From NCBI GenBank assembly GCA_013416795.1, contig RQSC01000002.1, positions 158,351 to 222,350 of the forward strand: a stretch of 64,000 nt of DNA, in the 5' to 3' direction. Below, piece by piece: positions 916 to 52,174 of the stretch. Source of the DNA: Prasinococcaceae sp. CCMP 1430. Its lineage: Eukaryota > Plantae > Prasinodermophyta. Made by a program: the position numbers and the translations under genes. The notes under the pieces are model-generated. The model did no database searches. It was given only the letters and a program-made list of their open reading frames with translations, and was not told where the DNA came from. How positions within the stretch are numbered: position 1 is the first letter of the stretch; every line of letters begins with the position of its first letter.

Positions 916-2869
916 CGAGGCGCTTGCGGGCGGTGGCGAAGATGGCGGCGCGCTCGCCGAGGCGGCGGCGGCGGTGAGGGTGACGTCGCTGATCCTGCAG
1001 GAGAAGTACGACGCCGCGCTCGCGTGCGACCCGCCGCCGAACGCGTTCCAGCGCGCGTACTGCCTCTACCGAAAGGGCGAGCAGGAGGCCGCGCTTGCCG
1101 TGCTCGAGGACGCCGGCACTGAAGACGCGGACGTGTGCCGGCTGCGTGCTCAGACGCTCTACCGGCTCGGGCGCGCGTCCGAGGCGCTCGCCGAGCTGCA
1201 GCCGCAGGTCACCACCGCACGCGGCGCACCGGACGCCGCCGAGATCGTCACGAACGCGCTGGCGTGCGCCGCCGCCGCCGCCGCCGCTGCGGATGGCTCG
1301 AAGGCTGCCGACACGGGGAGTGAGGGCGCAATCGAGGCGATGCTCGATGCGACCGGAGTGGAACCGCGCGACAGCTTCGAGGTGGCGTACAACGTGGCGT
1401 GCGCCGCCCTCGCCTGCGGCGACGTCGCGCGCGCCGAAGAAATGCTCAACCTCGCGCTCAAGGTGGGGCGCGCCGCGCTGGAACTCGACGACGCCGGCGA
1501 AGATGAGATCTCTGAGGAGTTGGCGCCGGCCGAAGTCCAGCTGGCGTACATCGCACAGCTCGGGGGGGGCGCGGAGGAAGCAGCCAAGGCGTACACAAGC
1601 GTCCTTGACGGCGGCGCTGACGCCGTGACTACTGCGGTCGCGGCCAACAACTTGGCTGCCGCGCGCGGCAAGCACGAGGTCTTCGACAGCCTCAAGCGTT
1701 TCGCAGGGCTGTTCGGCCCGAAGAAAAGCGCGTCCGAGGCGAACGCGATCGTGGCCTCGCTGGACACCCGGCTGGGCCCGGCCCAGCGACGCGCGCTCAT
1801 GCGCACGCGCGCGCTGCTGCTGCTGCACGCGGGCAAGAGCGAGCTCGCGGGGCGCGCCGCGGACGCGTACGGCAGCGCGTTTCCCGACGATGCTGCCGCA
1901 GCCATCCTGGCGGCGTCGCGGCCAGGTGTTTCCCCGGGCGTCGCCGATGATATGCTCAGCAGCTACGCCGGTGGCCAGCGTGGGCCCGCCGCCGCTGCTG
2001 CCGCCCACTGCGCGCGCGCCGAGCTTGCCGCGCGCGCCGGGCTGCTGGAGGAAGCAGCCGCGGCGCTCGAGGCGGTCGCGGAACTGATCAAGTTGACCCC
2101 GCCTGTTGTGGCAACCCTCCTCGACGTGTACGGCAGGCTGGACGATGCAGAGCGCTCCGCGGCGACGCTGGAGCGCGCGCTCTCCCCGGGCGGTGGCGGC
2201 GGGGACATGGCCCTCCCCGCCGAGCTGCTGCGCGGCGCTGCCGAGCGGCGACAGGTGGAGGGGAGGCATGCGGAGGCGGCGGAGCTTTGGCAACGCTGCG
2301 AGGCGCGCGCGGCGCGCGGCGACGAGGGTGATGACACGCTCGCGCGGCTCGCGCGGGCGGGCGCGGTGGAGTGCCTCGCGAGCTCTGGGCAGGTGGGCGC
2401 CGCCGAGGAGCTCGCTTCCGGCCTCGCGCCCGTGCCAGGCGCCGAAAAGCTCAACCCCGAGGCGCTGCTCTCAGCGCCAGTGCGTGAGAGGGCAGATGCG
2501 GGCAAGGTCGGGTCGACGGCCCTTGAGGGGGGCGAGAGCGCCGGGTGTAGCGGCGAGGCGGAGCAGCCCCGCAAGCGCAGGGTCATGTCAGAGCGGCGGA
2601 AGGAGCGCAAGCGCCTGCGCCGCCTGCCCAAAGGCTTCGATCCGGCCAACCCGGGGCCGCCGCCCGATCCGGAGCGCTGGCTCCCGAAGCGCGAGCGCTC
2701 AACATTCCGCCGCAAGCGCAACAAGAAGGTCACGGGAGGGCAGGGAGCAGTCAATGTGGAATCCATGGGCAAGCTCGACGCCGCCACGCAGGAGGCCGCC
2801 AAGACACAACAGGCGCCCTCGCGCGGCAGCGGAAAGAAAGGCCGCAAGCAAAAGGGGGGCAGGCGGTGA
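916..2869 (+). CDS. SRP72: Signal recognition particle subunit SRP72 (extreme N-terminus missing or fused to UROD)
   Basis: TPR region ([26 protein letters not shown]) and the C-terminal SRP RNA-binding signature [27 protein letters not shown], followed by a basic tail. The start coordinate is an approximate junction. Confidence 0.9.

Positions 2870-28240: not shown

Positions 28241-28281
<41 letters not shown>
28241..28281. repeat. Poly(dT) tract, 41 nt
   Basis: Uninterrupted T run ending 42 nt before ATG 28323. Confidence 0.95.
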
Positions 28282-28322: not shown

Positions 28323-31300
28323 ATGGCCGCTAGGCCGGCAACGGGAGGCGCGCCGGCGGGCGCACCCACGCACGACGGCACCTTCAGCAGCGAGATGGCG
28401 GAGCACCTGCCGCACGGGACCGCACTGGTGTCGCCTATGGCGGCCGCCGCTGCAGCAGGCCCCCTCGCTGCCGCTTTTCAGCGCTACGCGCGCCCCGACG
28501 GCACCGTCTCGAGAGCAGAGCTGCTCTTCGCGCTCACGGATCTCGACGCGGGCAGCCATCTTGGCGGTGCGGCGCGATCGGCTCGCGCCTTCGACGCCGC
28601 CCTATCGGGCGTCGCGCCGGCTGGGGTCGCGGATGCCGTTGACCGCAGGTACACTTTCGAGGAGTTTTGCTCGATGTATGCGAGCGTCCAGTACAAGGCG
28701 ATTGCTGGCGCGAGCTCGCCGCGCACAGATGCTACCACGACGCAGATGCGCGCGCTCCAGCGTAAGGTGCGCGACGTCTTCCGCGCCGTTGCCATCGCAG
28801 CGGATGATGCCGCCGAGGCGATCACGCCAATGAGTGCCCTTCGGCTACCCTTCGAGGCGTTCGAGCGTCTGTGTGTCTCCAGCAGCCTCGTCGATCGCAG
28901 GCTCTCAGAGACGGGCCTCGCGGTGCTCTTCGCGTCGGCGAAGAGCGAGCGCGACGAGCTCACCTTCGACCAGTTCTTAGGCGTGCTGTCGAGGATTGCA
29001 GAGATGAAGGGCATGCACCTGGAAGACCTCGCGCACCAGCTGCGATCCGCGGCGCGAGCGACCATCAACACCTACAAGGCCAAGCGTGATACCGGGAGAG
29101 CCGGCGGCGCCGAGAAACCTTCGACGGGGGCCCAAGCCGTAGCAGCAGCGATGGCGCACGCCGAGCACGGCGCACAGGCTGGAATCGTCGCCGAGAATGA
29201 CCGCCTGCATGAGGAGGAGATGCGCAGGCGCCGCGAGGCGCGCTGGGCGGCCCCGGTGTGGAACCAGAGCCCGGCCGCGCTCGGCAGGGGCGAGAGCAAG
29301 GATGTGCCCTCGCACATTGCCAGTGGCGGCAGGCCGTTCACAGCGCCGGCCGGCGGACGCTCGGGGGCGCTCACGCCCGCAGACGTCTTTCGCGCGCTGG
29401 ATGCGAAGGACACAGGCTTGCTCACGCGGGACGAGGCGGTCATGTTGCTCGCACAAATTCGAGTCTTCGACAATGCAGCATGCCAGGTTGCGGCTGACTC
29501 GGCCGCGCATGAACTCGCGAGGTCGCTGAGCGTGCGAGCTGGCCCCGGTACGCGTTGCGTCGGGTTCGACCAGATTTCTCAGCTGATCAAGGCCACCAGG
29601 CGCAAGTTGGCCCGCGAGAGCAAGGGTGCGCCCTCACCGCCAAAGCCGATGCAAGTGCCCGAGACAGTGCCGGAGGGCCTCCATGCTGCCTTCGTCAGCT
29701 TCGCGGTCAAGGCCAAGGCAGCCCAGGTCGTTGCGGCTGCCAATAGTGGTGTGCGCACGCCCGAGAGCAAGAGGTCTGCACGTTCTGCCCCCCCGCGCAT
29801 TACGATTGCGCAATTCCTGGACTGTTGCGCGTCCGCGCGGCTCGGGCTCGAGCCAGCCAGTGGTCGCGCAGACCCGCGCATCGTTGCGTTTGCGCGGTGT
29901 GCGGCGCCAGGCCGACGCACCCTTGATTTCCCCGCTTTCTGCGAGGCGAGTGCGCTGGTTGCGACTGAGGGTGGGAACGTTGCCGGCGGATTCGAGGAGG
30001 TGGCTGTGCGGATCATAGCGGCGAGCAAAGGCGTCGAGGCGGACATCGCCGCGTCTCCGGTGAAGGCAGCCGCTGCGAGCGGCACTGGCGGCGCAGCCGT
30101 CACCATCTCGCTGATCTTCGAGCGCTTTGCGCGCGACGGCCTGCTCAGCACAGCCGATGTGCCCTTTGCAATCGGCGATCTCGGACTCCTCGCCAACACG
30201 GAGAGCTCTGCGATTGGTGCATTCCTCTGCAGGGAAGTTTCGAAGCGCGCTGGAGCGAGCGCGCATGCCGCGTTGTCGCTGGACGACTTTGCAGCCCTGG
30301 TGGGCTCCGTGACGTCTGCGAGGGCATTGCCTCAATTCAGGCAGCCTGGGAGCGGTGCGGGCGATGCGGGCGCCCCGATGGTCCCACCGAGCACCTACAA
30401 GGGCCACGGACGCCTGAAGGCGGTATTTGACACCGCGGCGGCGGCGCAAGTCGCTTCGACGCCCGGCCTTGGGAGCCCTCTGTCGCCTGCCGACAAGGCG
30501 CGCGCGCTCTCCTTGGCGCAGTTCGTTCGCCTCTGCACAGACGCCGGCCTCTGTGGCGGCGAGGGCAAGACCTGCAGCCTCCCGACCTACGATGGGCTCA
30601 CGATTATCCACGCGCGCAGCCGCAAGGCCGCGCTTGAGACTAGCAGGGCGGAGGCGATGCCGTCCACCGATGGGCCTCTGTCGCCACGAACGCCACGCCA
30701 GCGCGGGGCGACACGCCGCCTCGGGTGGGCTGGATTCCTTGTTGCGCTATCGGATATCGCTCAAGCGCGGGATGTTGCAATGCTTCGCGTGGTTGATGCG
30801 GTGCTCAATCTTGCGCCTGCCACGCCCTCGCCGGTGCCTTCGAGCGCCCGAGCTAAGGCCAAGGCGAGCCCAAAGGGTACTCCCGCTGAGGCCCGCCTCG
30901 CGGCTCAGCGCAAATCTCCGTTTGCTACAAAGCCATCCAAACTCAGGCAGCCATCGCCTGGTGTCAAGTCACCCGAAAGCAGGACGCTCTCAGAGAGCAA
31001 AGCCGCGCGCGGGGCGGAGCAGCCGCAGCGGGCGAAACAGCAGAAGCAGCGGGCTGAGAAGGAGCGCGAGGCCGAGCATGACTTGGCCGAGCAAGCGCGC
31101 AGTGCGCTCGAAAATGCAGTAGAGAAGGCATTCGCGAAGCGAGCAGGCGCCTCGCCCGTCCTTGGCGCTGACGACATTGGACTCGTCCTGGTCGAGGCGG
31201 GCGCCCTCAGCCGTCAGGTTGGCCTGGGTTGTGCCGGCGAGGTTGCCAGCGTGCTCGCGCAGAGCAATGCGGCGATGGAACCGGTCGATGTTGCGACGGC

Positions 31301-32432
31301 AAAATCGCAGGCCCTCGCTGTGGCGGAGCTCGAGAGCGCGCGCGGGCAGGAGGCGGCTGCGATGGCCCCCACTCCCGAGTTGCGAGCATCCGACGCCGTG
31401 CGCAGGGCCTTTGACGCGACCGGTAGTGGCGAGCCATGCGTCGTGACTCCCGGGGGCTTCGCGCTCGTGTGCGAAGCGTGTGGCTGGGTGGAGGCGGGCA
31501 CACCGGGTGCGGGGGCGGCGGCGATCGCGATGGCGGCGGCGGCAGAGCCTGGCGCTGACGGTGGCGATTTGGAGGCATTCGCCACGGCGCTGGCTGCCAT
31601 CGGCCCTGCGGTCGGGTTTGCTACACCGGATGCTGTGCTGGGTGCCATTGAGGTACACTTCGCCGATTCCGACGAGCAGGCGGCGCCACTGGAGGCATCG
31701 GCCCCTGACGCTGCCGATGCGGTGCACGCATCCCCTCAAGTATCGCTCGAGGTGGACGACCTCGCTGTTGCCAACGCCTTCGCCGAGCACGGCACTGTGG
31801 GTGGCGCTGCGGGCGTCACCGCACGCGGGCTCTATCTTACGCTGGGCGACGCAGGCGTATTCGATGGCATCGATGCATCATTCGCCGGTGGCTTCTTGTA
31901 TGAGGTCATTACGAGCAACCCACCAGGACCGACAGGCATCCACCTCGACAACGCGCTCGTTCTCGCAATGGAGCTGCGACAGGCTGCCCAGGACGCTGGG
32001 GCGGGCGCGCCCCTGCCCCCCGAGATGCCTGCCAAGCTGCCCTTCGAGCGTATTCTGCGCAACACATTCATGCATTCGGTCAGCGCGCAGACTGGGGCGG
32101 TTAAGGATGCCATGACCAGCGGCACGATGATGCGACTTCTGAAGGGTTCGGGTCTGCTTGAAGATGGGAAGCCCTCCATGCGCGGCCTCGACGTCATCTA
32201 TTGCGTCGCGAGGAGGTCCGACGGTGCAAATCTCGGGTACGGTCGCTTCAGGCTCGTGCTCGCCCACGTCGCGCAGATCAAGGAGATGGAGTTCGGTGAC
32301 GTGGTCAAACGCGTCGCAGAGCGCTACGAGGCCTCGGTCGGTGGGCCGCTCGTGGCACAAGAGCAGGCTCGGCCGCTCGCCCTGCCGCCCGACAGCGGGT
32401 CGAAGGGGGGGTGTCGGTGCGCGATCATGTAG
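28323..32432 (+). CDS. 1369-aa multi-module EF-hand/p25alpha(TPPP)-like protein with a C-terminal CaaX motif
   Basis: Intronless ORF with recurrent p25alpha-like units (e.g. LFASAKSERDELTFDQFLGVLSRIAEMKG; LDVIYCVARRSDGANLGYGRFRLVLAHVAQIK) and EF-hand-like units (FRALDAKDTGLLTRDEA). Ends in GGCRCAIM-stop. Confidence 0.7.
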   Translation: MAARPATGGAPAGAPTHDGTFSSEMAEHLPHGTALVSPMAAAAAAGPLAAAFQRYARPDGTVSRAELLFALTDLDAGSHLGGAARSARAFDAALSGVAPAGVADAVDRRYTFEEFCSMYASVQYKAIAGASSPRTDATTTQMRALQRKVRDVFRAVAIAADDAAEAITPMSALRLPFEAFERLCVSSSLVDRRLSETGLAVLFASAKSERDELTFDQFLGVLSRIAEMKGMHLEDLAHQLRSAARATINTYKAKRDTGRAGGAEKPSTGAQAVAAAMAHAEHGAQAGIVAENDRLHEEEMRRRREARWAAPVWNQSPAALGRGESKDVPSHIASGGRPFTAPAGGRSGALTPADVFRALDAKDTGLLTRDEAVMLLAQIRVFDNAACQVAADSAAHELARSLSVRAGPGTRCVGFDQISQLIKATRRKLARESKGAPSPPKPMQVPETVPEGLHAAFVSFAVKAKAAQVVAAANSGVRTPESKRSARSAPPRITIAQFLDCCASARLGLEPASGRADPRIVAFARCAAPGRRTLDFPAFCEASALVATEGGNVAGGFEEVAVRIIAASKGVEADIAASPVKAAAASGTGGAAVTISLIFERFARDGLLSTADVPFAIGDLGLLANTESSAIGAFLCREVSKRAGASAHAALSLDDFAALVGSVTSARALPQFRQPGSGAGDAGAPMVPPSTYKGHGRLKAVFDTAAAAQVASTPGLGSPLSPADKARALSLAQFVRLCTDAGLCGGEGKTCSLPTYDGLTIIHARSRKAALETSRAEAMPSTDGPLSPRTPRQRGATRRLGWAGFLVALSDIAQARDVAMLRVVDAVLNLAPATPSPVPSSARAKAKASPKGTPAEARLAAQRKSPFATKPSKLRQPSPGVKSPESRTLSESKAARGAEQPQRAKQQKQRAEKEREAEHDLAEQARSALENAVEKAFAKRAGASPVLGADDIGLVLVEAGALSRQVGLGCAGEVASVLAQSNAAMEPVDVATAKSQALAVAELESARGQEAAAMAPTPELRASDAVRRAFDATGSGEPCVVTPGGFALVCEACGWVEAGTPGAGAAAIAMAAAAEPGADGGDLEAFATALAAIGPAVGFATPDAVLGAIEVHFADSDEQAAPLEASAPDAADAVHASPQVSLEVDDLAVANAFAEHGTVGGAAGVTARGLYLTLGDAGVFDGIDASFAGGFLYEVITSNPPGPTGIHLDNALVLAMELRQAAQDAGAGAPLPPEMPAKLPFERILRNTFMHSVSAQTGAVKDAMTSGTMMRLLKGSGLLEDGKPSMRGLDVIYCVARRSDGANLGYGRFRLVLAHVAQIKEMEFGDVVKRVAERYEASVGGPLVAQEQARPLALPPDSGSKGGCRCAIM

Positions 32433-34786: not shown

Positions 34787-37700
34787 TCAGTCCGAGGATG
34801 CCCCCGCGTGCTGCCCCCTGCCGCCGAAGAGCTGGAAGCGGCGCCTTCCGCCGCTGCTCGCCCTGTTGCCGCTCGAGGATGCGCTGTCAACAGCGTCGCC
34901 GCGCTGCCCCTCCTCAGAGAGCGCGCCGCTGGTAGGGCCCGTCGATTCGACCAAGCCGTGCCTGGCCCTCCTGTTTTCTCCGGAGCAGCACAAGCCGCAG
35001 GTGAGCCAACGAGGCAGCGCGAGGCACGGTGCTCGCGCGCCCGGCGCATCGCCACCACGCGAGTAGGTGCAGCATCGACCGCAGCGCTTGGCAACGGAAG
35101 CCCCAAAGACGATGGCCAGCACAAAGCCGCCGCTGACGGCCCAGACGATAAAGACGGACGGCGTGCCCAGCACGATGACAACGATGCTCACCACCAGCTG
35201 CCACAGCTGCATTGGCCCACCAAAGCGGATGAAGTCCCAAAATCTATAGCCGCCGGCACCGTACACCATGAGGTTGGTCTGATAGCCGAAGGGGCTCGCG
35301 AAGCTTGCAGAGGCGGCAAGCATGACGTTGAAGGACATGTTAAGAACGTCAGTGCCGGCATTGGTGGCGGCGTCTGCCGCGACGGGAAACATGAGGGCCG
35401 CGGCGGCATTGTTGCCGACGATGTTCGCGAGGACGATAGTGCCCACGTAGATAGCAACAAGCAGGCCTGTTTCTCCCGTGCCAGTGGCATCCGCGGCATC
35501 CACCAGCCATTTCGCGAGGTTGCCAGCGACGCCTGAATTCTCCAAGGCGTTCGACAAGCCGAAGGCCGACGCGATGGTGACGATCACCTGCCAGTTGACG
35601 CTATCGCGCGCCTGCTGCTGGGTGAGGCATCCCGTGATGATCATAAAGCCAGCTGCGAGAAGTGCGGACGTGAAGAGCGGCAGCACGTTGGCCACGGCCA
35701 GCGCGATCATGGTGATAGCCGCCGCACTCGCGACGTACAGCAGGTGGAAGCGCGGCGGCATCGAGTTGCGGATCTCAGACACGAGCGCGAAGGCCGGGTC
35801 TTTGCCGTGCGAGCGCATGAAACTCGGCCCCGTGTCCAGCAGCAGCACGTCGCCCGGCCGAAAGCGAATGGCGCCGATCTGCTCGTGCACTCGCTCGCCT
35901 GCGCGATGCACGGCAATGATGACAGCGTCGTAGCGCGTGCGGAAGCGCGCGTCCTTGGCGGTGTGCCCCACCAGCTCACTGTGCTGTGCCAGCACTGCCT
36001 GCACCAGCCGGCGCTCGGCCTTGGCCATTTTGAGCTTCGAGGTCTGGTCGTCCTCCAAGGGTACCAGCCCGGGCACACGCCTTAGGGCCGCCACACTCGC
36101 TAACTCGCCCGAGAACCACAGAATGTCGCCCACGCGCAGCTTGTCGTCGCGATCCGCCACCACGATGGACGGTTCCGAGGTTGTTGGCGCGACGCCGCCT
36201 TCATCCACCAGAGGGACACTCACGGACGGCGATGGGGGCGGCGCCTCCACATCCACACCGTGACCGTTCGTCGCGGCATCGGCGGGAGGAGGATCGCCGC
36301 CTGTCGTCTCAGTACCATTCACGCCGCCGTCATTTGCCTCGCCCTCAGCCTCGGCCTCGGCCTCTGGATGACGCTCGATGGAGGCGAGGAACAGGCCGGG
36401 CAGGCCACGCAGTCCAGCCTCCTGCACAGTCTTGCCGACGATGGGCGAGCCGCGCGCCACGCGCATCGCAATCATGAACTCGATTTCGGAGCTGCGCGAG
36501 CCCTGCACGATCTCGAGGTCGCGGTGGCACTCTCGCAGACTGGCCGGCTCATCCACGTTTGCTGCCAATGTAGCGGTGGAGGGCGCCGAGCCATCACCGC
36601 TGGCGGCGTCCTGGGAGCCTTGCGCCGCCTGCGTCGCAGCGGCCGAGTCATCCGTTTGTGAATCAGCGGGGGCATCGATGGTCACCGACGAGAGTTCAAC
36701 CCCAGACGCGCCCCCATTTTGCGCCTGCCGAGTTCCGTCCACGGCGTCGCTGCTAGTGCTCGCGTCGCTTGTCACAGCAGGTGCAGCAGGAGTCACAAAA
36801 CTGCTCGCGATGCGGCTGAACGCCCAGCGCGACGGCAAAGCCACCGACGAGGCTGCATCGCTGGCGGCGGCATCGTCTTCGGGCACATTGCCGGCGATGA
36901 GCTCCAGGAGCGCAGAGTTCGCTGACACTTGCATGATGATGATGTCACCCCGTTCGAGCTCCGTCTGCCCAATTTGGCCGTGCAGCTGCTCTCCTCGGCG
37001 CGCAATGGCGATGATCGCGGCGCCGTAGCGCCTTCGGAAGCCAACCTCTCGAGGCGTGCGCCCAATCAGGTGCGAATCAGGGCGCACGGCCGCCCGCGCC
37101 ATGCGCAATCCCGGCGGGGGAAGGCTCGGATGGGGAGCAACGGCTGGCGTGCCCGCGTATTCCCCGCCTGCTGCGATCGGCGCTGTGAGCGCTCGCTCCT
37201 CCTCTTCCTCAGAGAGCACGCTGTAGCCATCGGGGGCACGCGTGAAGCTCATCCCTCCCTCGCTGCGGGCGTAGCGACCTGACGGCAGCGCGAAGGACGC
37301 CTGCCTCGCACCGAACAGGCGTTCCTCGAGCGCCCGCTCTTGCGTGTCGGAGCCCTCCAAACCAACCACTCCGATGTCGGACGACGCGCGGAGCGCAGTA
37401 AGATCGGTGGGCCCCTGCGCGTCTCTGAGGAGAGGCTGCCCCGGGCGTAGCTGGATGCGGTCGAACAAGTTTTTCTTGATGCGCAGCTCCTGCGGTAGCT
37501 CATTTGGTAGATGCTCGGGCAGTTTTGGCAGGTGCAGATCCAGGTCGTTCGCTGCGCCTCGAATGAAGCCGCTCCGGCCGCCGAAGCGCATCGCGCTCGC
37601 CGTCGCGGCACCGCTCGTGGAGGCGCCCCCTTCAGCGTCGGCGCCCCCATCAGCGTCGGCGCCCTCGACGGCGGCTGACGGGTCCTCGCTAACATCGTGG

Positions 37701-38689
37701 TCGTGCTCGTGGTGCAAGGGTTCCAGGCCATACGCAGCGGCCACCTCGCCGAGTTTTTCGGCCATGCCGGTGAAGTGCAGCACGTCGCCCTCGTTGACCA
37801 CGAACTCGGGCCCGAGAGCGCGCACCAGCATGTCGCCGCGCCGCGCGGATACCAGGTAGAGGCCCGGCAGTCCACGCAGGCCGCCCTCAGCCACCGTGCG
37901 CCCCACGGCGGGGCTGCTCGGGCGCACGCGTGCGGCGACCACCAGCTCGCCCGTGGCACCTCTCGGCCCAGCCGCCGCTTGAGCTGCTTCGTCGTGCTTG
38001 CGACGCGCGCCGCCGGCCAGCAGCCACGGCGACACCAACAGTATGTACGCGAGCCCCGAGAACATCACGGGCACGCCGAATGGGCTCAGGTCGAAGATGC
38101 CGATCGCGGGTTGGTCGGGAAAGCGCTCCTCGTAGAGTCCGGACACCACCAGGTTGGTCGACGTCCCGATGAGTGTGCACGTGCCGCCCAGGATGGACGC
38201 GAAGCTCAGCGGGATGAAGAGCTGCCCCGGTGCGAGCTTGATGCGCGCTGCCCACTGCTGGACGATGGGGATCAGAATCGCCACGACCGGCGTGTTGTTG
38301 AGAAATGCGGACACCACCGCAACGGGCGCCATCAGCCTGAACTGCGCCGCGGCTGCCGTCTTGGGCGCCCCGAGGATGCGCTGCATGTAGTAGTCCAAGC
38401 CTCCGGTGTTGTTGATGCCCGCCGCCACCGCGAAGAGCACGCCCACCGTCAGCAGCCCCTGGTTGCTGAAGCCCTCGAGTCCCTCCGCCACGGTTATGAT
38501 CTTTGTCGTGGCAAGTATGAGCGCCAGCGCGCCCAGGAGCGCCATGTCGGGCTTGGCGTAGTCGAAGAGCATCAGCACGAACGCGATGACGACGCACACG
38601 GTGGTGTACCACGCCTCCCATCCCCACGAGGGGGTGTCATCGCCCGGCGGCGGCGGCGGCGGCGGCACGGCCGCCTCGTTCGACGCCAT
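34787..38689 (-). CDS. SLT: SLC13-family Na+/sulfate cotransporter (SAC1-like transporter, SLT) with four TrkA-C modules
   Basis: GFSNQGLLTVGVLFAVAAGI, SAFLNNTPVVAILIP, LSFASILGGTCTLIGTSTNLVV, four TrkA-C-like units in an A-B-A-B pattern, and SASFASPFGYQTNLMVYGAGGYRFWDF. Confidence 0.95.
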   Translation of the reverse strand: MASNEAAVPPPPPPPGDDTPSWGWEAWYTTVCVVIAFVLMLFDYAKPDMALLGALALILATTKIITVAEGLEGFSNQGLLTVGVLFAVAAGINNTGGLDYYMQRILGAPKTAAAAQFRLMAPVAVVSAFLNNTPVVAILIPIVQQWAARIKLAPGQLFIPLSFASILGGTCTLIGTSTNLVVSGLYEERFPDQPAIGIFDLSPFGVPVMFSGLAYILLVSPWLLAGGARRKHDEAAQAAAGPRGATGELVVAARVRPSSPAVGRTVAEGGLRGLPGLYLVSARRGDMLVRALGPEFVVNEGDVLHFTGMAEKLGEVAAAYGLEPLHHEHDHDVSEDPSAAVEGADADGGADAEGGASTSGAATASAMRFGGRSGFIRGAANDLDLHLPKLPEHLPNELPQELRIKKNLFDRIQLRPGQPLLRDAQGPTDLTALRASSDIGVVGLEGSDTQERALEERLFGARQASFALPSGRYARSEGGMSFTRAPDGYSVLSEEEEERALTAPIAAGGEYAGTPAVAPHPSLPPPGLRMARAAVRPDSHLIGRTPREVGFRRRYGAAIIAIARRGEQLHGQIGQTELERGDIIIMQVSANSALLELIAGNVPEDDAAASDAASSVALPSRWAFSRIASSFVTPAAPAVTSDASTSSDAVDGTRQAQNGGASGVELSSVTIDAPADSQTDDSAAATQAAQGSQDAASGDGSAPSTATLAANVDEPASLRECHRDLEIVQGSRSSEIEFMIAMRVARGSPIVGKTVQEAGLRGLPGLFLASIERHPEAEAEAEGEANDGGVNGTETTGGDPPPADAATNGHGVDVEAPPPSPSVSVPLVDEGGVAPTTSEPSIVVADRDDKLRVGDILWFSGELASVAALRRVPGLVPLEDDQTSKLKMAKAERRLVQAVLAQHSELVGHTAKDARFRTRYDAVIIAVHRAGERVHEQIGAIRFRPGDVLLLDTGPSFMRSHGKDPAFALVSEIRNSMPPRFHLLYVASAAAITMIALAVANVLPLFTSALLAAGFMIITGCLTQQQARDSVNWQVIVTIASAFGLSNALENSGVAGNLAKWLVDAADATGTGETGLLVAIYVGTIVLANIVGNNAAAALMFPVAADAATNAGTDVLNMSFNVMLAASASFASPFGYQTNLMVYGAGGYRFWDFIRFGGPMQLWQLVVSIVVIVLGTPSVFIVWAVSGGFVLAIVFGASVAKRCGRCCTYSRGGDAPGARAPCLALPRWLTCGLCCSGENRRARHGLVESTGPTSGALSEEGQRGDAVDSASSSGNRASSGGRRRFQLFGGRGQHAGASSD

Positions 38690-38981
38690 CGCCTCGCCCT
38701 TCCCTCCGCCCCGCTTCGCCCCCCGCGGGGCGGCCGCGCCCGCGTCGGTCCGTCCGCGCACCATCATCATCATCCCCCACACACCCACCTCCCCGTGGGC
38801 CCGCCGCGCCGCACGCGCGCACGCTGCTACCACCCACGCGCAGCACTTTTCGGCGCCGTCGTCGCCGCGTCTTTGGGTTACACCCAAACCTCAACGCAGG
38901 TCAATTTCAAGGCCAATCTCAACGCCAATTTCAGCGCCAACGCCGACGCCAAGCGACCAGACGAGAGCCAGGGAGAATGAG

Positions 38982-43892: not shown

Positions 43893-44738
43893 NNNNNNNN
43901 NNNNNNNNNNNNNNNNNNNNNNNNNNNNNNNNNNNNNNNNNNNNNNNNNNNNNNNNNNNNNNNNNNNNNNNNNNNNNNNNNNNNNNNNNNNNNNNNNNNN
44001 NNNNNNNNNNNNNNNNNNNNNNNNNNNNNNNNNNNNNNNNNNNNNNNNNNNNNNNNNNNNNNNNNNNNNNNNNNNNNNNNNNNNNNNNNNNNNNNNNNNN
44101 NNNNNNNNNNNNNNNNNNNNNNNNNNNNNNNNNNNNNNNNNNNNNNNNNNNNNNNNNNNNNNNNNNNNNNNNNNNNNNNNNNNNNNNNNNNNNNNNNNNN
44201 NNNNNNNNNNNNNNNNNNNNNNNNNNNNNNNNNNNNNNNNNNNNNNNNNNNNNNNNNNNNNNNNNNNNNNNNNNNNNNNNNNNNNNNNNNNNNNNNNNNN
44301 NNNNNNNNNNNNNNNNNNNNNNNNNNNNNNNNNNNNNNNNNNNNNNNNNNNNNNNNNNNNNNNNNNNNNNNNNNNNNNNNNNNNNNNNNNNNNNNNNNNN
44401 NNNNNNNNNNNNNNNNNNNNNNNNNNNNNNNNNNNNNNNNNNNNNNNNNNNNNNNNNNNNNNNNNNNNNNNNNNNNNNNNNNNNNNNNNNNNNNNNNNNN
44501 NNNNNNNNNNNNNNNNNNNNNNNNNNNNNNNNNNNNNNNNNNNNNNNNNNNNNNNNNNNNNNNNNNNNNNNNNNNNNNNNNNNNNNNNNNNNNNNNNNNN
44601 NNNNNNNNNNNNNNNNNNNNNNNNNNNNNNNNNNNNNNNNNNNNNNNNNNNNNNNNNNNNNNNNNNNNNNNNNNNNNNNNNNNNNNNNNNNNNNNNNNNN
44701 NNNNNNNNNNNNNNNNNNNNNNNNNNNNNNNNNNNNNN
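43893..44738. other. Assembly gap (N run)
   Basis: 846 consecutive N. Confidence 1.
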
Positions 44739-45300
44739 GCGGCCGGGGAACGCGCGCGGGCGAGCGGCCGCGCGCGCGCCGAAAAGGCCATACTTCGTGC
44801 GCACGTTCATCTGCATCTCCACCGAGCTCCCTCCCCGCCTGCGCCCGCGCGTACGCGCCTGCGCCCGCCGGCGCGCGTCGCGTGCGCACCTTCGGGGAAC
44901 GGAACGCGCCGCATCGAAACGGCGGAAATGTGTTTGGTATCAGAGTTTGACGCCGCGGATACATCGCGAGGGTTTCGGGAGGACCGGCGGGCGCGGCGAC
45001 TGGCATGCCCTTCCTGAAGAGCTATGAAAACGAAAGGGCGGGCCGCGGGCCCGAGACCACTCGCTCGGCGGCGCGCGCTGCGCACTGCTCCTGCGCGCCG
45101 CGTGCGGAGAGGCGCTCCCCCCCCCCCCCATTCGAAAATCGCCGACGTTTACGCGCGCAAGCGAGCAAGTCATCGCAAGTCATCGCAAGCCATCGCCTCG
45201 TCGGCCTCGCGTTTGATGATGTATACTGGCGGTCTGGCCGAGCTCCTCTGAGCACCAAACCCCTCTCGTAAGCAAGCAAGCAAAGCACTTCCCTCACAGC

Positions 45301-46366
45301 TCACAGCCCCGCCTCCTTGCCGTCGGCCTGGCGCAGCTCGCCGAGGTTGGTGGGCGCCTGCGCGGCGCAGATCTTGGAGTTGGCGAAGCGCGCGGCGTCG
45401 CCGCCGGCCTCCTTGACCTTGGAGTTGATCCAGTCGTACGTGATCTTGAGGCCCTCCTTGAGCGGGGTGTCGGGCTCCCAGCCGAGCTTCTCCTTGATGA
45501 GGGTGTTCTCGGAGTTGCGGCCGCGCACGCCCTCGGGGCCCGGGATGTGCTTGATGGGCAGCGACTTGCTCTCGAAGCCGATGACCATCTCGGCCATCTC
45601 GTTCATCGACACCATCTCGGTGGAGCCGAGGTTGAGCGGCTCGCAGAAGTCCGACTTGGTGATGCGCAGGATGCCCTCGACGCAGTCCTCGATGAAGGTG
45701 AAGGAGCGCGTCTGCTTGCCGTCGCCCCACATCTCGAACTCCTCCGTCGAGGTGATGGCCTTGCGGCAGAAGGCGGCGGGCGCCTTCTCGCGGCCGCCCT
45801 GCCAGGTGCCGTACGGCCCGTAGATGTTGTGGAAGCGGGCGATGCGCGTCTGGATGCCGAAGTCGGTCTGGTAGTGCTTGTAGATCTCCTCCGACGCCAG
45901 CTTCTCCAGGCCGTAGGCGTCCTGCGGCTCCGCGGGCCACGCGTACTCCTCCTTGAGGCCCGGGTTGGAGGGGTCCAGCTGCTTGTTCTCCGGGTAGATG
46001 CACGCCGAGGACGCGTAGAACATGCGCTCCACCTTGTTGATGCGCGCGGCCTCCAGCATGTTGAACGAGATCATGGTGTTGTTGTACATGATCACCGAGT
46101 GGTTGGACTGGATGAAGCCCATGCCGCCCATGTCCGCCGCGAGGTTGAAGACGTGCGTGCAGTCCTTGGTGACCTTGAGGCAGTTGTCGTACACGCGCAG
46201 GTCCGCCAGGATGAACTCGTCGCAGAACATGTCCTCGGTCATGTGCTCATTCTTCTTCCAGTCGACGGCGCGCACATAGTGGCCCTCGCCCTTGAGGCGA
46301 CGCGCGAGGTGCGACGCGATGAAGCCGCCCGCGCCGGTGATGCAGATCTTGAGCTTGCCAGCGGGC
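45301..46366 (-). CDS. GME: GDP-D-mannose 3',5'-epimerase (last exon; first exon in gap)
   Basis: ITGAGGFIASH, FNLAADMGGMGFIQSNHSVIMYNN, YASSACIYPE, QDAYGLEKL, GGREKAPAAFCRK and GPEGVRGRNS. CAG acceptor at 46367 with a CTGAC branch point. Confidence 0.97.
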
Positions 46367-46452
46367 CTGCGTCGCGCGATCGCGTCAGCGCGCGCGACCG
46401 CCACCCGCCCACCGCGCGCGCACGGCGCCGCGCACGACGCCTCCGCCAAACA

Positions 46453-46934
46453 NNNNNNNNNNNNNNNNNNNNNNNNNNNNNNNNNNNNNNNNNNNNNNNN
46501 NNNNNNNNNNNNNNNNNNNNNNNNNNNNNNNNNNNNNNNNNNNNNNNNNNNNNNNNNNNNNNNNNNNNNNNNNNNNNNNNNNNNNNNNNNNNNNNNNNNN
46601 NNNNNNNNNNNNNNNNNNNNNNNNNNNNNNNNNNNNNNNNNNNNNNNNNNNNNNNNNNNNNNNNNNNNNNNNNNNNNNNNNNNNNNNNNNNNNNNNNNNN
46701 NNNNNNNNNNNNNNNNNNNNNNNNNNNNNNNNNNNNNNNNNNNNNNNNNNNNNNNNNNNNNNNNNNNNNNNNNNNNNNNNNNNNNNNNNNNNNNNNNNNN
46801 NNNNNNNNNNNNNNNNNNNNNNNNNNNNNNNNNNNNNNNNNNNNNNNNNNNNNNNNNNNNNNNNNNNNNNNNNNNNNNNNNNNNNNNNNNNNNNNNNNNN
46901 NNNNNNNNNNNNNNNNNNNNNNNNNNNNNNNNNN
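46453..46934. other. Assembly gap (N run)
   Basis: 482 consecutive N. Confidence 1.
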
Positions 46935-47975
46935 GCCAGCCCGGGTCCGTGCCGCCGGCGCGTCTCACTCGGCCGCCACCCCGACCGCCTCCGCGCCGCC
47001 CGACGCCGCGGGCTTGCCCGACGCCGCGGCCAAGCCCGCGTCCGAGTGGGACGCGAAGGGCCTCGTGCAGGAGGCCGCGCGGCAGGTGTATCGCGCCGAG
47101 AAGGTACGGACGGCGCCACGACTGGCGAATGCGCTCTCGCTGCCAGCCGCTGACGCCTCGAACGCGCCCCGGCGCCCCCCTCGCCACCCCACCCCACACA
47201 CAAAAACGCCGCCACCACCACCACGTGCAACAACCAACCAACCACAACAAAGCGGCTCTTCAAGGCAGCGGCTTCGAAGCGCCAGGCCGACGAGCGGTAC
47301 GCGGCGGTCGAGGCGCTGGGCGACGCGGCGACGCTCAAGCAGCTCGAGAGCGTCCCGGATGTGGACGCCGCAGCCGCGCGCGTCTCGGACGCGCGCCAGA
47401 AGCTCGAGGCGCTGCGGGACCTCGAGGCTGCCGCGCGCGCGTGCGCCGGGGAAGGGGTGAGCGACGAGGTGGCGGCTGCCGCGCTCGCGCTGGGCGTGGG
47501 CGACGCTCCGCCGCCCAAGCAGCCGCGTGGCCCCAAGCGCAAGAAGGGCCCGCCCGCATCTTCGGTGGCGCCGCGCAAGCCCTACTGGCGCTACACGTCA
47601 GCCGACGGCGTCGAGATCCGTGTGGGGCGGCGCGCCGCCGACAACGACGAGCTCAGTTGCGACCCCGCGCACCGCGACGCCGCCGACTGGTGGCTGCACG
47701 CCGCGGGGTGCCCGGGCAGCCACGTGGTCATACGCACGCACGCAGACGACGTGCCCAAGGAGACGCTCGCGGACGCGGCGGCGCTCGCCGCCAAGAATTC
47801 CAAGGCACGGCAGCGCGGCAAGGCGCCGGTGACGCTCTGCCGCTGCCGGCAGGTGTCCAAGCCGCGCGGGGCGAAGGCTGGCCTCGTCCAGCTCTCGGGC
47901 GACGTGCGCACGGTGAAGAGCGACGTGTCGGCCGAGGGAGCGCGGCTCGAGCGCCTCGAGGCGACCAAACAATAA
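46935..47975 (+). CDS. Stand-alone NFACT-R (DUF814) RNA-binding domain protein (5' end in gap)
   Basis: EIRVGRRAADNDEL, DWWLHAAGCPGSHVVIR, LADAAALAAKNS and VSKPRGAKAGLV. Probable intron 47104..47252. Confidence 0.85.
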
Positions 47976-48024
47976 CAGCCACGCATGCAACTCCCAAACA
48001 ATAACAGCCACGCATGCAACTCCC
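47965..48024 (+). repeat. 29-bp perfect tandem duplication spanning the NFACT-R stop codon
   Basis: CCAAACAATAACAGCCACGCATGCAACTC x2 (47965..47993 and 47994..48022) plus CC. Confidence 0.95.
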
Positions 48025-48290: not shown

Positions 48291-50109
48291 TCAAATCAGC
48301 TGCGGCTCACCAGCGCCCGCGCCGGCCGCGCCGCCGCCGCCGCCGTACGACTCGTCCCACGCGGTCGCGCCGTGCCCCTCGGCGCTGCTGATGCTGGCAT
48401 CCTCGCCGTCCTCGTCGAGGGAGAGGCGCACGTACTCTGCGCGCGCGAAGCGGTCCCACTCGGTGAGCGTGGGGTCCTCCCTCTCCTGGCGGATGAGGAA
48501 CGGGTCGCGCGTCTCGAAGGCGATGAACTTGTTGAGGTTGCTCAGCACGTTGAAGAAGTTGCCAGACAGCGAGCAGCGCTTGAGGTCGCGCAGCGTGAAG
48601 ACGCCCTCGGAGCCGGGCTTGATCATGTCCGACATCTGGCACGAAATGTCCTCGAAGAGCACCGGCTCCTGCTGCAGGCACTCCATGCGGTGGAGCTGCT
48701 CGTCGTAGAAGTGGCGCAGCTCGTGCGGCAGCAGCAGGCCGTCGCCGTCGAGGTCGATGCAGCGGAACCAGTACTCGAGCGACTGCGCGGTGGTCTTGTC
48801 CTCCTCCGACAGGATGAACCAGCAAAAGTCTTCGTACCCCATCTTGCCCGGGTGCCCCGACACGAAGCGCCTCGGCGCCTCGGCGAAAATGCGGTCGACG
48901 ATGCGGTACGTCAGCGCGTGGTTGCCGTAGCGCATGAGGTCCTCGCGGTCCAGCAGGAAGTCGTGGTCCTGGTCGAGCTCCCAGAAGCGGCAGTAGATCA
49001 CTGCGCGGCCGGCACGACCGCGAGGGGGTCAGCGGAAACGCGAGCAGCGCGCCGGCATGGACGCGCGCGGCGGCGACAAGGCGCTCCGCGCGCGCGCGCG
49101 CGCGCGCGCACGGAGGATCCCGCCGCAGCGCGGGCACACGCCGCACGCACGCACCGTAGAAGTGCTCGTAGCTGAAGTACTTGACCACGCGGTTGATGTC
49201 CTCTTCGTCGTCCGCCATCGCCATCGCCTCGAGCAGGTCGGACTTGCCCAGCTCGCGCAGCGTCATCTTGCCCGTGTCGGAACGGTTGACGCCGTAGAAA
49301 ATGCGGTGGATGACGGTCTCGGCGTAGCGCTCCTGGAACTCGGGCGTCTCCGAGAGGAACTCAAGCCCCGGGTGGCGCGCGACGAGGTCGTTCAGCACGG
49401 GCAGGAAGTCCTGATTGCACACGTGGGGCTTGCCTCGCCGCAGGAGCTCGAACGCGCGGGCGTGCACGTCCAGGTGCGCCATCTTCGCCTCGAAGCAGTC
49501 TAGAAGCGCCCGCATGTCGACAGTCTGCCCGGCCGCGTCCCGCAGTTGCTGCGGCGAGCCGTCGCCCACGCTCTTGCCCGTCACGTACTCGAAGAGCAGC
49601 GGGCCGAGGAAGGACGGCAGCCCGCAGAGCTCGCGCGCGACGCGCGCGAAGTCCGCCACGGCCAGCCCCCCGTCCCCCACCGCGGCGAACAGCGCCCTCG
49701 CGCGCTCCCTTCCCTCGGCGCGCTGCTCGTCCGTGACCTTCCTGCCGCCGGGGAAGTAGAACTGCGGGATCTCCTGCTCGGGCGCCGGCGCGCGCGCCCC
49801 CGGCGCCCCGCCCGCGCCCGCGCTGGCGCGCCCGGAGTGGCGCCTGTGCGGCGACGGCGAGCGAGGGGGGCTCGTGCACTTGGCAGGCGAGAGCGGTGGC
49901 ATGGCCAGCGAGAGCAGCGCCTGCGCGCTCGTGGGGCTGAGCGGAGAGCCCGCTCCGCCGCCGCTGGGGCTGGCACCGCCGGCCGCCGCGCCGCGGCTCT
50001 CCGGGCCGAGCAGCGGCCTCCCCTCGCGCGCGTCGTCCAGCAACTTCATGACCAGCGCTTGTGAGTCGGGCAGGCTCAGCCAGTGCAGGAAGAGCTCATC
50101 GAGCTTCAT
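48291..50109 (-). CDS. Protein phosphatase 2A regulatory subunit B'' (EF-hand)
   Basis: [42 protein letters not shown]|[22 protein letters not shown] and [15 protein letters not shown]. Intron 49001..49154. The N-terminus may extend past 50109. Confidence 0.95.
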
Positions 50110-50149
50110 CTTGCTGCTCGGCGTGCGCACCTTCGGCGCATCCGCGCCG

Positions 50150-50377
50150 CCCCCCTACGCGCCGGTGGACTGCCTGGTGCCGGGGCTGCCGCGCACGCTG
50201 CCCGCCGAGACGTACGAGGCCTTCCACGCGCGCCGCCTCTCGGGCTTTTACGGGCCGGGCGCGAGCGCGCTCGAGGCGTGGCGAACGTACAACGCCGACA
50301 TCCTCGCCTTCGACGCCGACGGCCGCCTCGACGCGGCCGTGCGCGGCGAGCTGCGCGGCGAGGCGCCCGCGGCGTGA
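50150..50377 (+). other. Orphan 3' coding fragment abutting the PP2A B'' 5' end head-to-head
   Basis: Strong GC3-biased reading [34 protein letters not shown]...[15 protein letters not shown]...stop 50377. No start codon or acceptor is evident and the family was not recognised. Confidence 0.5.
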
Positions 50378-50564
50378 CTCGACCGGGCGGCTCGGGAGCG
50401 TGCCGAGTGCCCCGAGAGGCCCGTCGCGCGCGGACGCGGGCGCCTGCGCCTGCGCTGTGTGCGTCCTCCCCTGCGCCCACGCGCCCGCCTGCGCACACAC
50501 ACACAGCTGTGTGATAATAATGCATGTATAGTACTACTGTACAGTGGACCAGGCCCCAGTACCA

Positions 50565-50708
50565 CACGCGCAGCGCACGCTCCACCTCCACGGTGAAGTC
50601 GACGTGGCCCGGCGCGTCGGTAACGTCGATCGCGGTGTCTCCCCACGAGCAGTAGTTCGCGACAGCGGACCCGATGGCGACGCCCCTCTCGCGCTCGAGG
50701 TCCATCGA
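50565..50708 (-). pseudogene. Degenerate elongation factor G (mitochondrial EF-G1-like) G-domain fragment
   Basis: [15 protein letters not shown]...[30 protein letters not shown] against the family consensus MDLERE(R/K)GITI.SAAT.C.W...[21 protein letters not shown]. The catalytic RGIT and DTPG motifs are mutated. Confidence 0.85.
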
Positions 50709-50741
50709 GCCTGGAACGACTGTCAGTACGCACTCGTACTA

Positions 50742-50888
50742 CTCCTCGAACTCCGCCGGCGAGAGGTGGTGCGCCCACGAGTCGAAGAGCTGCACGGTCT
50801 GCGCGCCGCCCCTGACCTGGCACTCGCAGCAGGCGATGGGCGCCTCGGTCAGGTGGTCCAGGAAGGCGTGCAACGCCTCGGGGGTGTG
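50742..50888 (-). pseudogene. Degenerate plastid-type UROD fragment, in frame with the EF-G fragment but separated by a TAG
   Basis: PEALHAFLDHLTEA...CQVRGGAQTVQLFDSWAHHLSPAEFEE* resembles green-algal UROD (GAQxVQLFDSWA). Stop at 50739..50741. Confidence 0.75.
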
Positions 50889-50924
50889 CACCTCCTGTAT
50901 CTAGTGTGCACCGTACTACAACAG

Positions 50925-51060
50925 TTCTTCTGCACCATGCTCACCTCCATGTTCCCGCCGATGCTGCTGCTGACCGCCTCCAAGCGGACGGGCCAGGAGC
51001 TCAACACCGTCACCGGGGTCGCGTGCTACGCCACCATGGCGCTCGCCGCCGCACTCGAAG
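50925..51060 (+). pseudogene. Third coding-like fragment (hydrophobic, unassigned) in the patchwork locus
   Basis: FFCTMLTSMFPPMLLLTASKRTGQELNTVTGVACYATMALAAAL with GC3 bias, flanked by GTAC-rich linkers. Confidence 0.4.
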
Positions 51061-51099
51061 CTGCTGCAACGACTGTAACGGCCGACCACCCTGCGGTGA

Positions 51100-51600
51100 G
51101 GTTTGGGTTCAATACACAGTGTACTGTACACATATATTTAGGTATACACTTCTATCAGGGTTACTAAAACTGCCGGAGGGTGGGGGGGCGCAGGGGCACG
51201 CCAGGATGATAACATGTCAGCTCGGCGGGGCGGATATATCATAACTCATTTATGTCATAACATGCATATTACTTTGCATCTAACATTCTGTAGGTCACGG
51301 TGCATCTGATCGTTTGCGAATAGGTTCGAATGCATCCTTTGGGAATGCGTGTCAAAAAATGTCTCAGATTTGCTCTCTGGCGCTGACGTCAGAGGATGGT
51401 ACACCCGTCAGCTCGGCGGGGTTATTTCATCAAAATACACCAAATTTAGAACCTGTATATTTCTCTGCATCGAGCAATGCGTAGGTTATAATGAATCTGA
51501 GCGTTAGCGAAATACGTTTATATGCATCCATTCGGATTGTATATGAATTGTGATGTAAAATGTGCTCTGGCTCTGAGGTCAGAACGCATGCGATGCGATC
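51100..51600. other. AT-rich island with a 15-bp direct repeat
   Basis: Hand counts give 33% GC for 51241-51300 and 37% GC for 51481-51540. GTCAGCTCGGCGGGG occurs at 51216..51230 and 51407..51421. Confidence 0.85.
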
Positions 51601-51816
51601 GATGCACGCGCGGCGCGCGCCACAGCGCTCGCGCGGCGCGGGTGGCGTGGGCGCGGGAGGACGGGGATCTGACGCAGCGAGGGAGGGGGTGAGGTCGCGA
51701 GCGCGCGCTCGCATCGCGCGTGCGAGGGAGTGGGGGAGGGGGAGTGAGGGGAGCCTCCGCCGGCCGCGCCCCCCTGCCGCTCGCGCGCGAGTTTGCGCGC
51801 CGCCTTTTTTTTTTTT

Positions 51817-52174
51817 NNNNNNNNNNNNNNNNNNNNNNNNNNNNNNNNNNNNNNNNNNNNNNNNNNNNNNNNNNNNNNNNNNNNNNNNNNNNNNNNNNNN
51901 NNNNNNNNNNNNNNNNNNNNNNNNNNNNNNNNNNNNNNNNNNNNNNNNNNNNNNNNNNNNNNNNNNNNNNNNNNNNNNNNNNNNNNNNNNNNNNNNNNNN
52001 NNNNNNNNNNNNNNNNNNNNNNNNNNNNNNNNNNNNNNNNNNNNNNNNNNNNNNNNNNNNNNNNNNNNNNNNNNNNNNNNNNNNNNNNNNNNNNNNNNNN
52101 NNNNNNNNNNNNNNNNNNNNNNNNNNNNNNNNNNNNNNNNNNNNNNNNNNNNNNNNNNNNNNNNNNNNNNNNNN
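51817..52174. other. Assembly gap (N run)
   Basis: 358 consecutive N, flanked by a T run and a C run. Confidence 1.

Follow-up and report, generated by a model that had tools for sequence, protein, structure and literature searches.

A divergent tandem EF-hand/p25alpha protein of Prasinoderma coloniale with degenerate calcium loops and a putative C-terminal lipidation motif

Proteins that combine several p25alpha (TPPP-like) domains with EF-hands were catalogued in Chlorophyta by Orosz in 2012 as 'multidomain' TPPP-like proteins, which carry two to three short p25alpha domains, with XP_003058058 of Micromonas pusilla and XP_001691800 of Chlamydomonas among the examples, three p25alpha domains in one M. 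pusilla protein and a multiplication of p25alpha domains within species (PMC3498115). Two-domain p25alpha proteins with EF-hands are known from chromerids and dinoflagellates (PMC10304595), and a 'triple long' TPPP of Cymbomonas was called a surprise in a paper of 2025 (PMC12731214). A lipidation motif, or an array of five to seven modules, on such proteins is described in none of these three papers. We analysed a 64,000-nucleotide stretch of the genome of Prasinococcaceae sp. CCMP 1430 (contig RQSC01000002.1, positions 158,351 to 222,350 of the forward strand; hereafter the window, in whose coordinates all positions are given) and report on an open reading frame (ORF) at 28323..32432 (+ strand, stop codon included) that is complete and unspliced, encodes 1369 residues and ends in SKGGCRCAIM. 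Sequence comparison identifies its product as a divergent, alanine-rich Prasinodermophyta member of the green-algal tandem EF-hand/p25alpha proteins, and the architecture as such is not new. Like the proteins of the 2012 catalogue, it carries several short or truncated p25alpha cores and EF-hand regions on one long green-algal polypeptide, with a function that is putative in both cases. It differs from them in having five modules rather than up to three p25alpha domains, in the degeneration of all its EF loops, in a sequence similarity too low for Pfam to recognise more than one domain, and in its CxCaaX terminus, a feature that PMC3498115 does not discuss.

The modular structure emerged from profile comparisons. 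Self-blastp of the 1369-residue protein found no internal repeats, because the modules are too diverged, and profiles were therefore needed; phmmer with the whole protein found no match among PDB sequences. At the Pfam gathering cut-offs (22.6 bits for p25-alpha, PF05517, and 25 bits for EF-hand), a scan with hidden Markov models (HMMs) bore out one of the two families named in the first-pass annotation of this DNA, since PF05517 matched once above threshold, at residues 179-254 with 24.9 bits, which assigns the protein to this family, while the EF-hand scores all stayed below threshold. The PF05517 match spans only profile positions 24-104 of 153 (its counterpart in the ortholog P0002 scores 35.9 bits), and a Pfam scan of ten separate pieces of the protein yielded nothing beyond module 1. 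We then used a profile of 190 positions built only from modules of three relatives (P0018, P0020 and P0021, described below), the external profile, which matched full modules at residues 47-242 (58 bits) and 354-567 (31 bits), a full module with an insertion at residues 595-769 and 797-828 (34 and 5.8 bits), and the p25alpha lobe at residues 1229-1333. Scored over their whole segments, modules 1, 2, 3 and 5 reached 65, 40, 50 and 32 bits, respectively, scores attained by none of 1000 composition-matched shuffles (best about 8 bits). Similarly, hhalign against the external profile gave 98.2, 97.7, 98.1 and 97.1% for these four modules, collinear over about 160-185 columns, with both lobes covered in modules 1-3 and a match that begins partway into the EF lobe in module 5. 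By the criterion of at least two collinear cores, hhalign places the protein among the green-algal multi-module proteins with EF-hands and short p25alpha domains. Finally, a profile of ten modules, taken from the 1369-residue protein and its ortholog, retrieved TPPP structures and nothing else significant from the PDB (9J4E at E = 2e-4, then 9J4D, 9J4F, 1WLM, 1PUL and 2JRF). The protein is thus built of five collinear modules, four of them robust and one decayed, acidic and moderately supported, much as the first-pass annotation had it when it counted about five p25alpha-like units, each behind a degenerate EF-hand-like unit.

All of the modules lie on the + strand of the window. Module 1 (28461..29087, residues 47-255) consists of a degenerate EF-hand pair and a short p25alpha core and is recovered by Pfam, the external profile, hhalign and the shuffles. 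It is followed by an inter-module segment (29208..29357, residues 296-345; W-A-A-P-V-W ... G-R-P-x-T-A-P-A-G-G-R) that is strongly conserved with P0002 and gave no match when compared with the C-terminal extension known from short-type TPPPs; an HMM search after each core did not find this extension either. Module 2 (29358..30038, residues 346-572; profile 31 bits, hhalign 97.7%) and module 3 (30078..30827, residues 586-835; profile 34 and 5.8 bits, hhalign 98.1%), which has an insertion within its p25alpha core, precede the central basic Ser/Pro-rich linker that had been noticed at first reading and that we confirm at 30828..31097 (residues 836-925) from its composition and the structural model. 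The linker splits the modules into three and two, has an isoelectric point of 10.6, holds 20 K+R and 24 S/P/T in 90 residues together with several S-P-x-K-type sites, and runs into a long helix predicted at residues 906-941, where an ortholog-only AlphaFold2 (AF2) model has a predicted local distance difference test score (pLDDT) of about 62-74. Module 4 (31098..31667, residues about 926-1115) is a decayed copy that was compared by hhalign with both the external and a combined profile: the external profile gave 2.8%, a score that 13 of 1000 shuffles reached, and the combined profile, which holds the protein's other modules too, gave 79.5% (E = 1.5e-5, 175 collinear columns). Its p25alpha-like core (residues 1031-1115) contains no K or R and 11 D+E; the cores of modules 1, 2, 3 and 5 contain 12-15 K+R each. 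Module 5 (31743..32342, residues 1141-1340), identified by hhalign (97.1%) and an AF2 model, comprises an EF-hand-pair-like lobe and a p25alpha lobe. The protein does not qualify as a long-type TPPP, which is defined by a full 160-residue domain and a GxGxGxxGR 'Rossmann-like' segment.

Predicted structures were obtained for the C-terminal part of the protein. AF2 model A covers residues 905-1369 and was built from an alignment of orthologs only; its module 4 p25alpha-like lobe, the only part fit for further use, reaches a pLDDT of 65-83. Foldseek found no meaningful match for model A. The structural aligner VIA, which is independent of Foldseek and was applied after low-confidence stretches had been trimmed, returned 7n6g_5Z as the first match of the module 4 lobe (Z 7.8 over 117 residues), and its further matches comprised residues 865-1071 of chain 5A of 9NW3 (Z 5.8) as well as EF-hand domains. 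The matched stretch of 9NW3 coincides with TPPP-like domain 1 (residues 889-1064) of Tetrahymena TLP2 (PMC11642885). AF2 model B, comprising module 5 and the tail, was built from a 24-row alignment of modules in which true p25alpha modules were included, and it reached a pLDDT of 86.3 and a predicted template modelling score of 0.80. Its top Foldseek matches were mouse and human TPPP3 (1WLM and 2JRF, probability 1.0, E = 0.008 and 0.027), and VIA matched residues 106-210 of the model to 7n6g_5Z (Z 10.1), 2JRF (Z 8.9), 1WLM (Z 8.4) and 9nw3_2A (Z 7.8), and residues 11-97 to lobes of calmodulin, centrin and troponin C (Z 5.7-7.0). A search of the ESM Atlas matched module 5 as a whole, with both its lobes, to a 149-member chlorophyte EF-hand and p25-alpha cluster (template modelling score 0.62 over 187 residues), and a language-model search with the full protein ranked the same cluster first. 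The p25alpha fold that had been proposed for the modules was thus recovered in model B, whose module 5 has the helical core of TPPP3 (2JRF, 1WLM); for module 4, the ortholog-only model gave a Z of 7.8 to 7n6g_5Z, a value that helical domains can also reach by chance. With animal TPPP/p25 and TPPP3 (2JRF, 1WLM, 9J4E) the protein shares the helical p25alpha core, PF05517 and Z scores of 8.4-8.9; however, the animal proteins are single-domain and of the 'long type', with disordered tails and a C-terminal GxGxGxxGR, both of which are missing from the 1369-residue protein. Modules 4 and 5 both have as their best structural match chain 5Z of 7n6g, from the C1 part of the Chlamydomonas central pair, at 2-8% identity; no sequence match of this chain to the modules was found, and it may represent unassigned density with a p25alpha-like fold.

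To place the protein among its relatives, we compared residues 170-1369 with 1.84 billion protein representatives in an exhaustive HMMER search (E <= 0.001), which gave seven matches: P0001, P0002, P0018, P0020, P0021, P0022 and P0019. Four of the seven have several p25alpha modules, and three of these four have EF-hands as well: P0018 has three modules in tandem, each made of a canonical EF-hand pair and p25alpha; P0020 is a partial protein of Cymbomonas tetramitiformis in which EF-like and p25alpha units alternate; P0021 has an EF-hand pair and three p25alpha domains; and P0022 has five p25alpha domains. P0019 (2067 residues, E = 8.5e-8), an unrelated protein of tandem repeats, lacks p25alpha, and we rejected this match as spurious. 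Longer members of two of the clusters share the plan. P0023, a metagenomic protein from the P0018 cluster, has 1668 residues with five modules behind an N-terminal region that by eye is apparently a coiled coil, and P0027 (Cymbomonas KAK3261347.1, 'EF-hand domain-containing protein'), from the P0020 cluster, has 1538 residues with seven modules; a word search started from the Cymbomonas protein retrieved nothing but that protein. Both repeat the module of EF-hand pair plus p25alpha core (seven copies in P0027 and five in P0023), and P0027 resembles our protein further in that many of its EF units are degenerate too and its tail has two cysteines. On the other hand, both are only about 30% identical to the 1369-residue protein, over short stretches, keep some canonical EF loops (two and seven, respectively) and lack a canonical CaaX box, and P0023 has the added, apparently coiled-coil N-terminal region and no terminal cysteine. 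The architecture, which the first-pass annotation did not recognise as described, therefore has precedents, both in the green-algal proteins with EF-hands and two to three short p25alpha domains catalogued in 2012 (PMC3498115) and in the seven-module Cymbomonas and five-module 1668-residue proteins of the public data.

Several lines of evidence indicate that the ORF is a real gene. A word-indexed search recovered a population variant, P0001, of equal length and 97-99% identity on Tara and other marine metagenome contigs. P0001 differs from the window ORF at 38 of 4110 bases, distributed over 20 synonymous and 18 non-synonymous codons; third codon positions hold 21 of the 38 changes, an excess that points to purifying selection. 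Metatranscriptome contigs from four runs and three studies are collinear on the ORF with no joint and no gap, the longest-reaching of them extending to 32428, two bases short of the stop codon, and this coverage suggests transcription, although DNA carry-over is possible. The RNA-library contigs end at the borders of the gene, with none reaching into the 5' intergenic region and none connecting across the 3' gap to the neighbouring gene. The ortholog P0002 (1669 residues) is collinear with the protein over about 1300 residues and all modules at 46-52% identity, with indels in frame only, and on its contig as in the window the convergent downstream neighbour is a tRNA U5-methyltransferase gene. 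We conclude that 28323-32432 is a genuine Prasinoderma coloniale gene under purifying selection.

We next consider calcium binding, which the first-pass annotation had thought possible and which the sequence does not favour. With a PROSITE-type 12-residue pattern we counted no canonical EF loop in the 1369-residue protein or in P0001, two in P0002, five in P0018, seven in P0023 and two in P0027, so that the canonical Ca2+-ligand pattern is absent from all ten EF loops of the protein. Pfam scored its EF-hands at 14.8 bits at best against the cut-off of 25, which does not qualify the protein as a Ca2+ sensor, and module 2 gave a sub-threshold EF-hand_6 match (E = 0.025). The least degenerate loop, in module 2 at residues 360-371 (D-A-K-D-T-G-L-L-T-R-D-E), keeps five of six key positions and has Lys at ligand position 3. 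This lysine and the lack of any canonical loop make intrinsic calcium sensing unlikely, and, judging from the loops, the protein has almost certainly lost the ability to sense Ca2+ through its own EF-hands. In P0002 (L005:6561-11570), by contrast, a canonical EF-hand pair with two perfect loops (41.6 bits) lies at residues 934-1010, within the linker, where the 1369-residue protein has basic Ser/Pro-rich sequence instead.

The C-terminal tail was examined in the same way. The terminus GGCRCAIM, seen at first reading, does stand directly before the stop codon, as C-R-C-A-I-M (32412..32429, +), a CaaX box built on Cys1366 and preceded, two residues upstream, by another cysteine, Cys1364. It has Cys at -4, aliphatic a1 and a2 and a prenyltransferase-selecting X at a true C-terminus, since the RNA-library contigs run unspliced to 32428 and nothing in them points to another splicing of the end of the protein. 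The tail is identical across all full-length strain variants. A CaaX box with X = M is a substrate of farnesyltransferase, and dually lipidated CxCaaX-type tails also occur in the Ras hypervariable region. The comparison with plant G-gamma subunits drawn at first reading is fair, because Arabidopsis AGG2 has the same cysteine spacing, with Cys at -4 and, two residues upstream of this prenylated Cys, a putatively S-acylated Cys that is needed for plasma-membrane targeting (PMC3927097). AGG1 and AGG2 differ in having CaaL boxes and being geranylgeranylated, whereas X = M in the 1369-residue protein predicts farnesylation, and the AGG-type tails differ also in that the box of our protein is not kept in its ortholog. 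Indeed, the CaaX box is not conserved in the ortholog, which in part bears out an objection foreseen in the first-pass annotation: the box is missing from P0002, no alternative frame of which offers a nearby CaaX, and only the terminal Cys-x-Cys is kept, G-C-x-C being the only invariant element of the alignment in an otherwise loose tail. Two scans of Joint Genome Institute (JGI) metagenome contigs gave no further ortholog, and the conservation of the tail therefore rests on this one. Among the more distant relatives, Cymbomonas P0027 ends in four lysines followed by S-I-F-S-C-C-F-G-G, with a cysteine pair of which one Cys is at -4, a tail that is a possible polybasic-plus-cysteine membrane anchor; terminal cysteines are absent from P0021 and P0022. 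On this comparison the terminal cysteines recur and the CaaX box itself is species-specific as far as the data reach, and lipid anchoring via the cysteines is a reasonable, putative addition to the description of the protein. Our literature search for p25alpha proteins that bear a lipidation or palmitoylation of their own found no paper.

How might such a protein act? In the Tetrahymena ciliary tip (PDB 9NW3), globular TPPP-like domains dock between protofilaments, and TLP2, with 1694 residues, spans eight of them (PMC11642885). The 1369-residue protein resembles these ciliary-tip central-pair proteins, TLP2 and TLP1, in that TLP2 is large and has more than one globular TPPP-like domain and in that modules 4 and 5 have the TPPP-like domains of these proteins among their structural matches. 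It differs in that TLP2 contains an ARM domain and just two TPPP-like domains, which are not preceded by EF-hand pairs, and lacks a lipidation motif, and no sequence relationship beyond the fold is detectable with either protein. By analogy, it is reasonable to expect our protein to bind microtubules. Each of its four basic p25alpha cores would sit in a protofilament groove of the lattice, as the domains of TLP1 and TLP2 do, and the protein would thereby be a multivalent stabiliser or linker of cortical microtubules or of those in a cryptic flagellar stage. The linker, being basic, could strengthen this attachment electrostatically and would probably be a target of regulation by phosphorylation; the C-terminal cysteines (farnesylated at Cys1366 and S-acylated at Cys1364) would tie one end to a membrane; and calcium control, if any, would come from partner proteins and not from EF-hands of its own. 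Of the possible functions, multivalent microtubule binding has the best support, and we give it about an even chance; the explanation as a whole, a tandem-module protein that binds microtubules multivalently and is tied to lipid at one end, strikes us as just as apt to hold as to fail. Several points weigh against it. The p25alpha cores are truncated, with neither the C-terminal extension nor the Rossmann-like motif, and, as a deletion study of human TPPP (PMC4542545) assigned microtubule binding to its disordered N and C termini, it is plausible rather than assured that truncated cores bind. Model A is poor overall (pLDDT 49.8), model B is not independent evidence for the fold, its alignment having held true p25alpha modules, and the structural Z scores (7.8-10.1) lie within the chance range of helical domains. 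As to the anchor, P0002, the one ortholog, ends in GCLCFRRPA with no CaaX box, and P0023 has no cysteine at its terminus.

These weaknesses leave room for other explanations. The protein could be a soluble structural component of an axoneme, basal body or spindle and be restricted to a rare stage, flagellate or gamete; its lobes would bind microtubules or axonemal partners, and its CAIM would be a species-specific accident, unmodified or without effect on location. This would suit the co-occurrence of p25alpha with flagella across eukaryotes (PMC10057920 and PMC9698843), the best structural matches, which are central-pair chains (7n6g_5Z and 9nw3), and the ortholog without a CaaX box. No flagella have been observed in P. 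coloniale, yet its genome encodes 217 flagellar proteins (PMC7455551), and cortical and cryptic-flagellate roles are therefore both possible. A purely soluble protein fits less well with the retention of the terminal Cys-x-Cys across about 50% divergence in an otherwise poorly conserved tail, with the recurrence of a cysteine pair after a polybasic run in Cymbomonas, and with the open-ocean RNA-library contigs, which, DNA carry-over apart, fit vegetative expression, and we consider it unlikely, if worth keeping in view. More doubtful still is a scaffold of EF-hand-like modules that would serve as Ca2+-free peptide clamps in the manner of calmodulin or S100 and would not bind microtubules, the p25alpha similarity reflecting no more than a shared EF-hand-type fold. 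The short, truncated cores, the degenerate Ca2+ loops, the absence of any basic residue from the core of module 4 and the additional matches of the model to S100, calmodulin, centrin and troponin C (Z 5-7) are all compatible with it; against it, sequence profiles pick TPPP structures and not generic EF-hand proteins for the second lobe, four cores keep their basic residues, and globular TPPP-like domains do bind the microtubule lattice directly (PMC11642885).

Less credible than either is a version that goes back to the first-pass annotation, a Ca2+-switched, membrane-anchored microtubule cross-linker that senses Ca2+ through its own EF-hands. The module plan does stem from relatives with canonical EF-hands (P0018/P0023), and the loop at 360-371 keeps most of its key positions, but the protein has no canonical loop, its EF-hand scores are below the Pfam threshold, and the ortholog's only canonical EF-hand pair sits in a linker insertion that the 1369-residue protein lacks, which makes this version very improbable. 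Finally, in a genome of 68-70% guanine plus cytosine (GC), where long ORFs on both strands are common, a protein with 20% alanine and a decayed module 4 might be a spurious ORF or a decaying pseudogene. The collinear ortholog with its in-frame indels and synteny, the Pfam match and profile scores far beyond those of shuffles, the enrichment of third-position changes among variants and the RNA-library contigs over the gene leave this with almost no credence, and as far as computational tools reach it is already refuted. Of the accounts considered, we retain multivalent microtubule binding by a tandem-module protein, with lipid anchoring of its end as a putative addition.

GC content in the window is 64-74%, except in low-GC islands (0.42-0.58) at 44001-48000 and 50001-52000; the genome of P. 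coloniale has 69.8% GC (PMC7455551). The neighbours of the gene encode ordinary housekeeping functions of eukaryotes: upstream a SulP transporter, and downstream the convergent tRNA U5-methyltransferase, a CitMHS/TrkA_C transporter and an ABCF ATPase, whose ORF is 100% identical to EukProt PRCOL_00006585 of P. coloniale. From this identity and the GC content we assign the window to P. coloniale; the ABCF match led us to reject a pelagophyte origin, which had been considered at first. A poly-T run of 41 nucleotides (28241..28281, +) lies in the intergenic or promoter region, 41 nucleotides upstream of the start codon, and was passed over as a repeat when the RNA-library contigs were mapped. Two other ORFs of the window are unusual in their domain content. 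The 903-residue ORF at 158-2869 (+) matches uroporphyrinogen decarboxylase at residues 15-257 and SRP72/TPR-like sequences at residues 272-851, which makes it either a fused gene or an in-frame read-through of two genes, and in the 1366-residue ORF at 34790-38887 (-) the CitMHS transporter match is split around three TrkA_C domains.

The p25alpha/TPPP-like domains have been treated as markers of flagellates, and the multi-domain algal forms have so far only been catalogued. At present our analysis offers a well-supported annotation with an inferred mechanism. The Prasinodermophyta split off before the divergence of chlorophytes and streptophytes; the EF-hand/p25alpha array thus occurs not only in chlorophytes but also in the deepest-branching green lineage, and it can be kept after the loss of all its calcium sites. 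Its terminal cysteines could tie microtubules to membrane. In its boldest form the proposal would be that lipidation of C-terminal cysteines is a shared, unrecognised trait of the giant green-algal EF-hand/p25alpha proteins and that the Prasinoderma protein is a lipid-anchored, multivalent membrane-microtubule tether, which we regard as a long shot that still merits attention. If it were true, a domain supposedly bound to the flagellum would have a cortical, non-flagellar job in a coccoid alga without observed flagella, and if both the anchor and the microtubule binding hold, these proteins would represent a simple type of membrane-to-microtubule linker.

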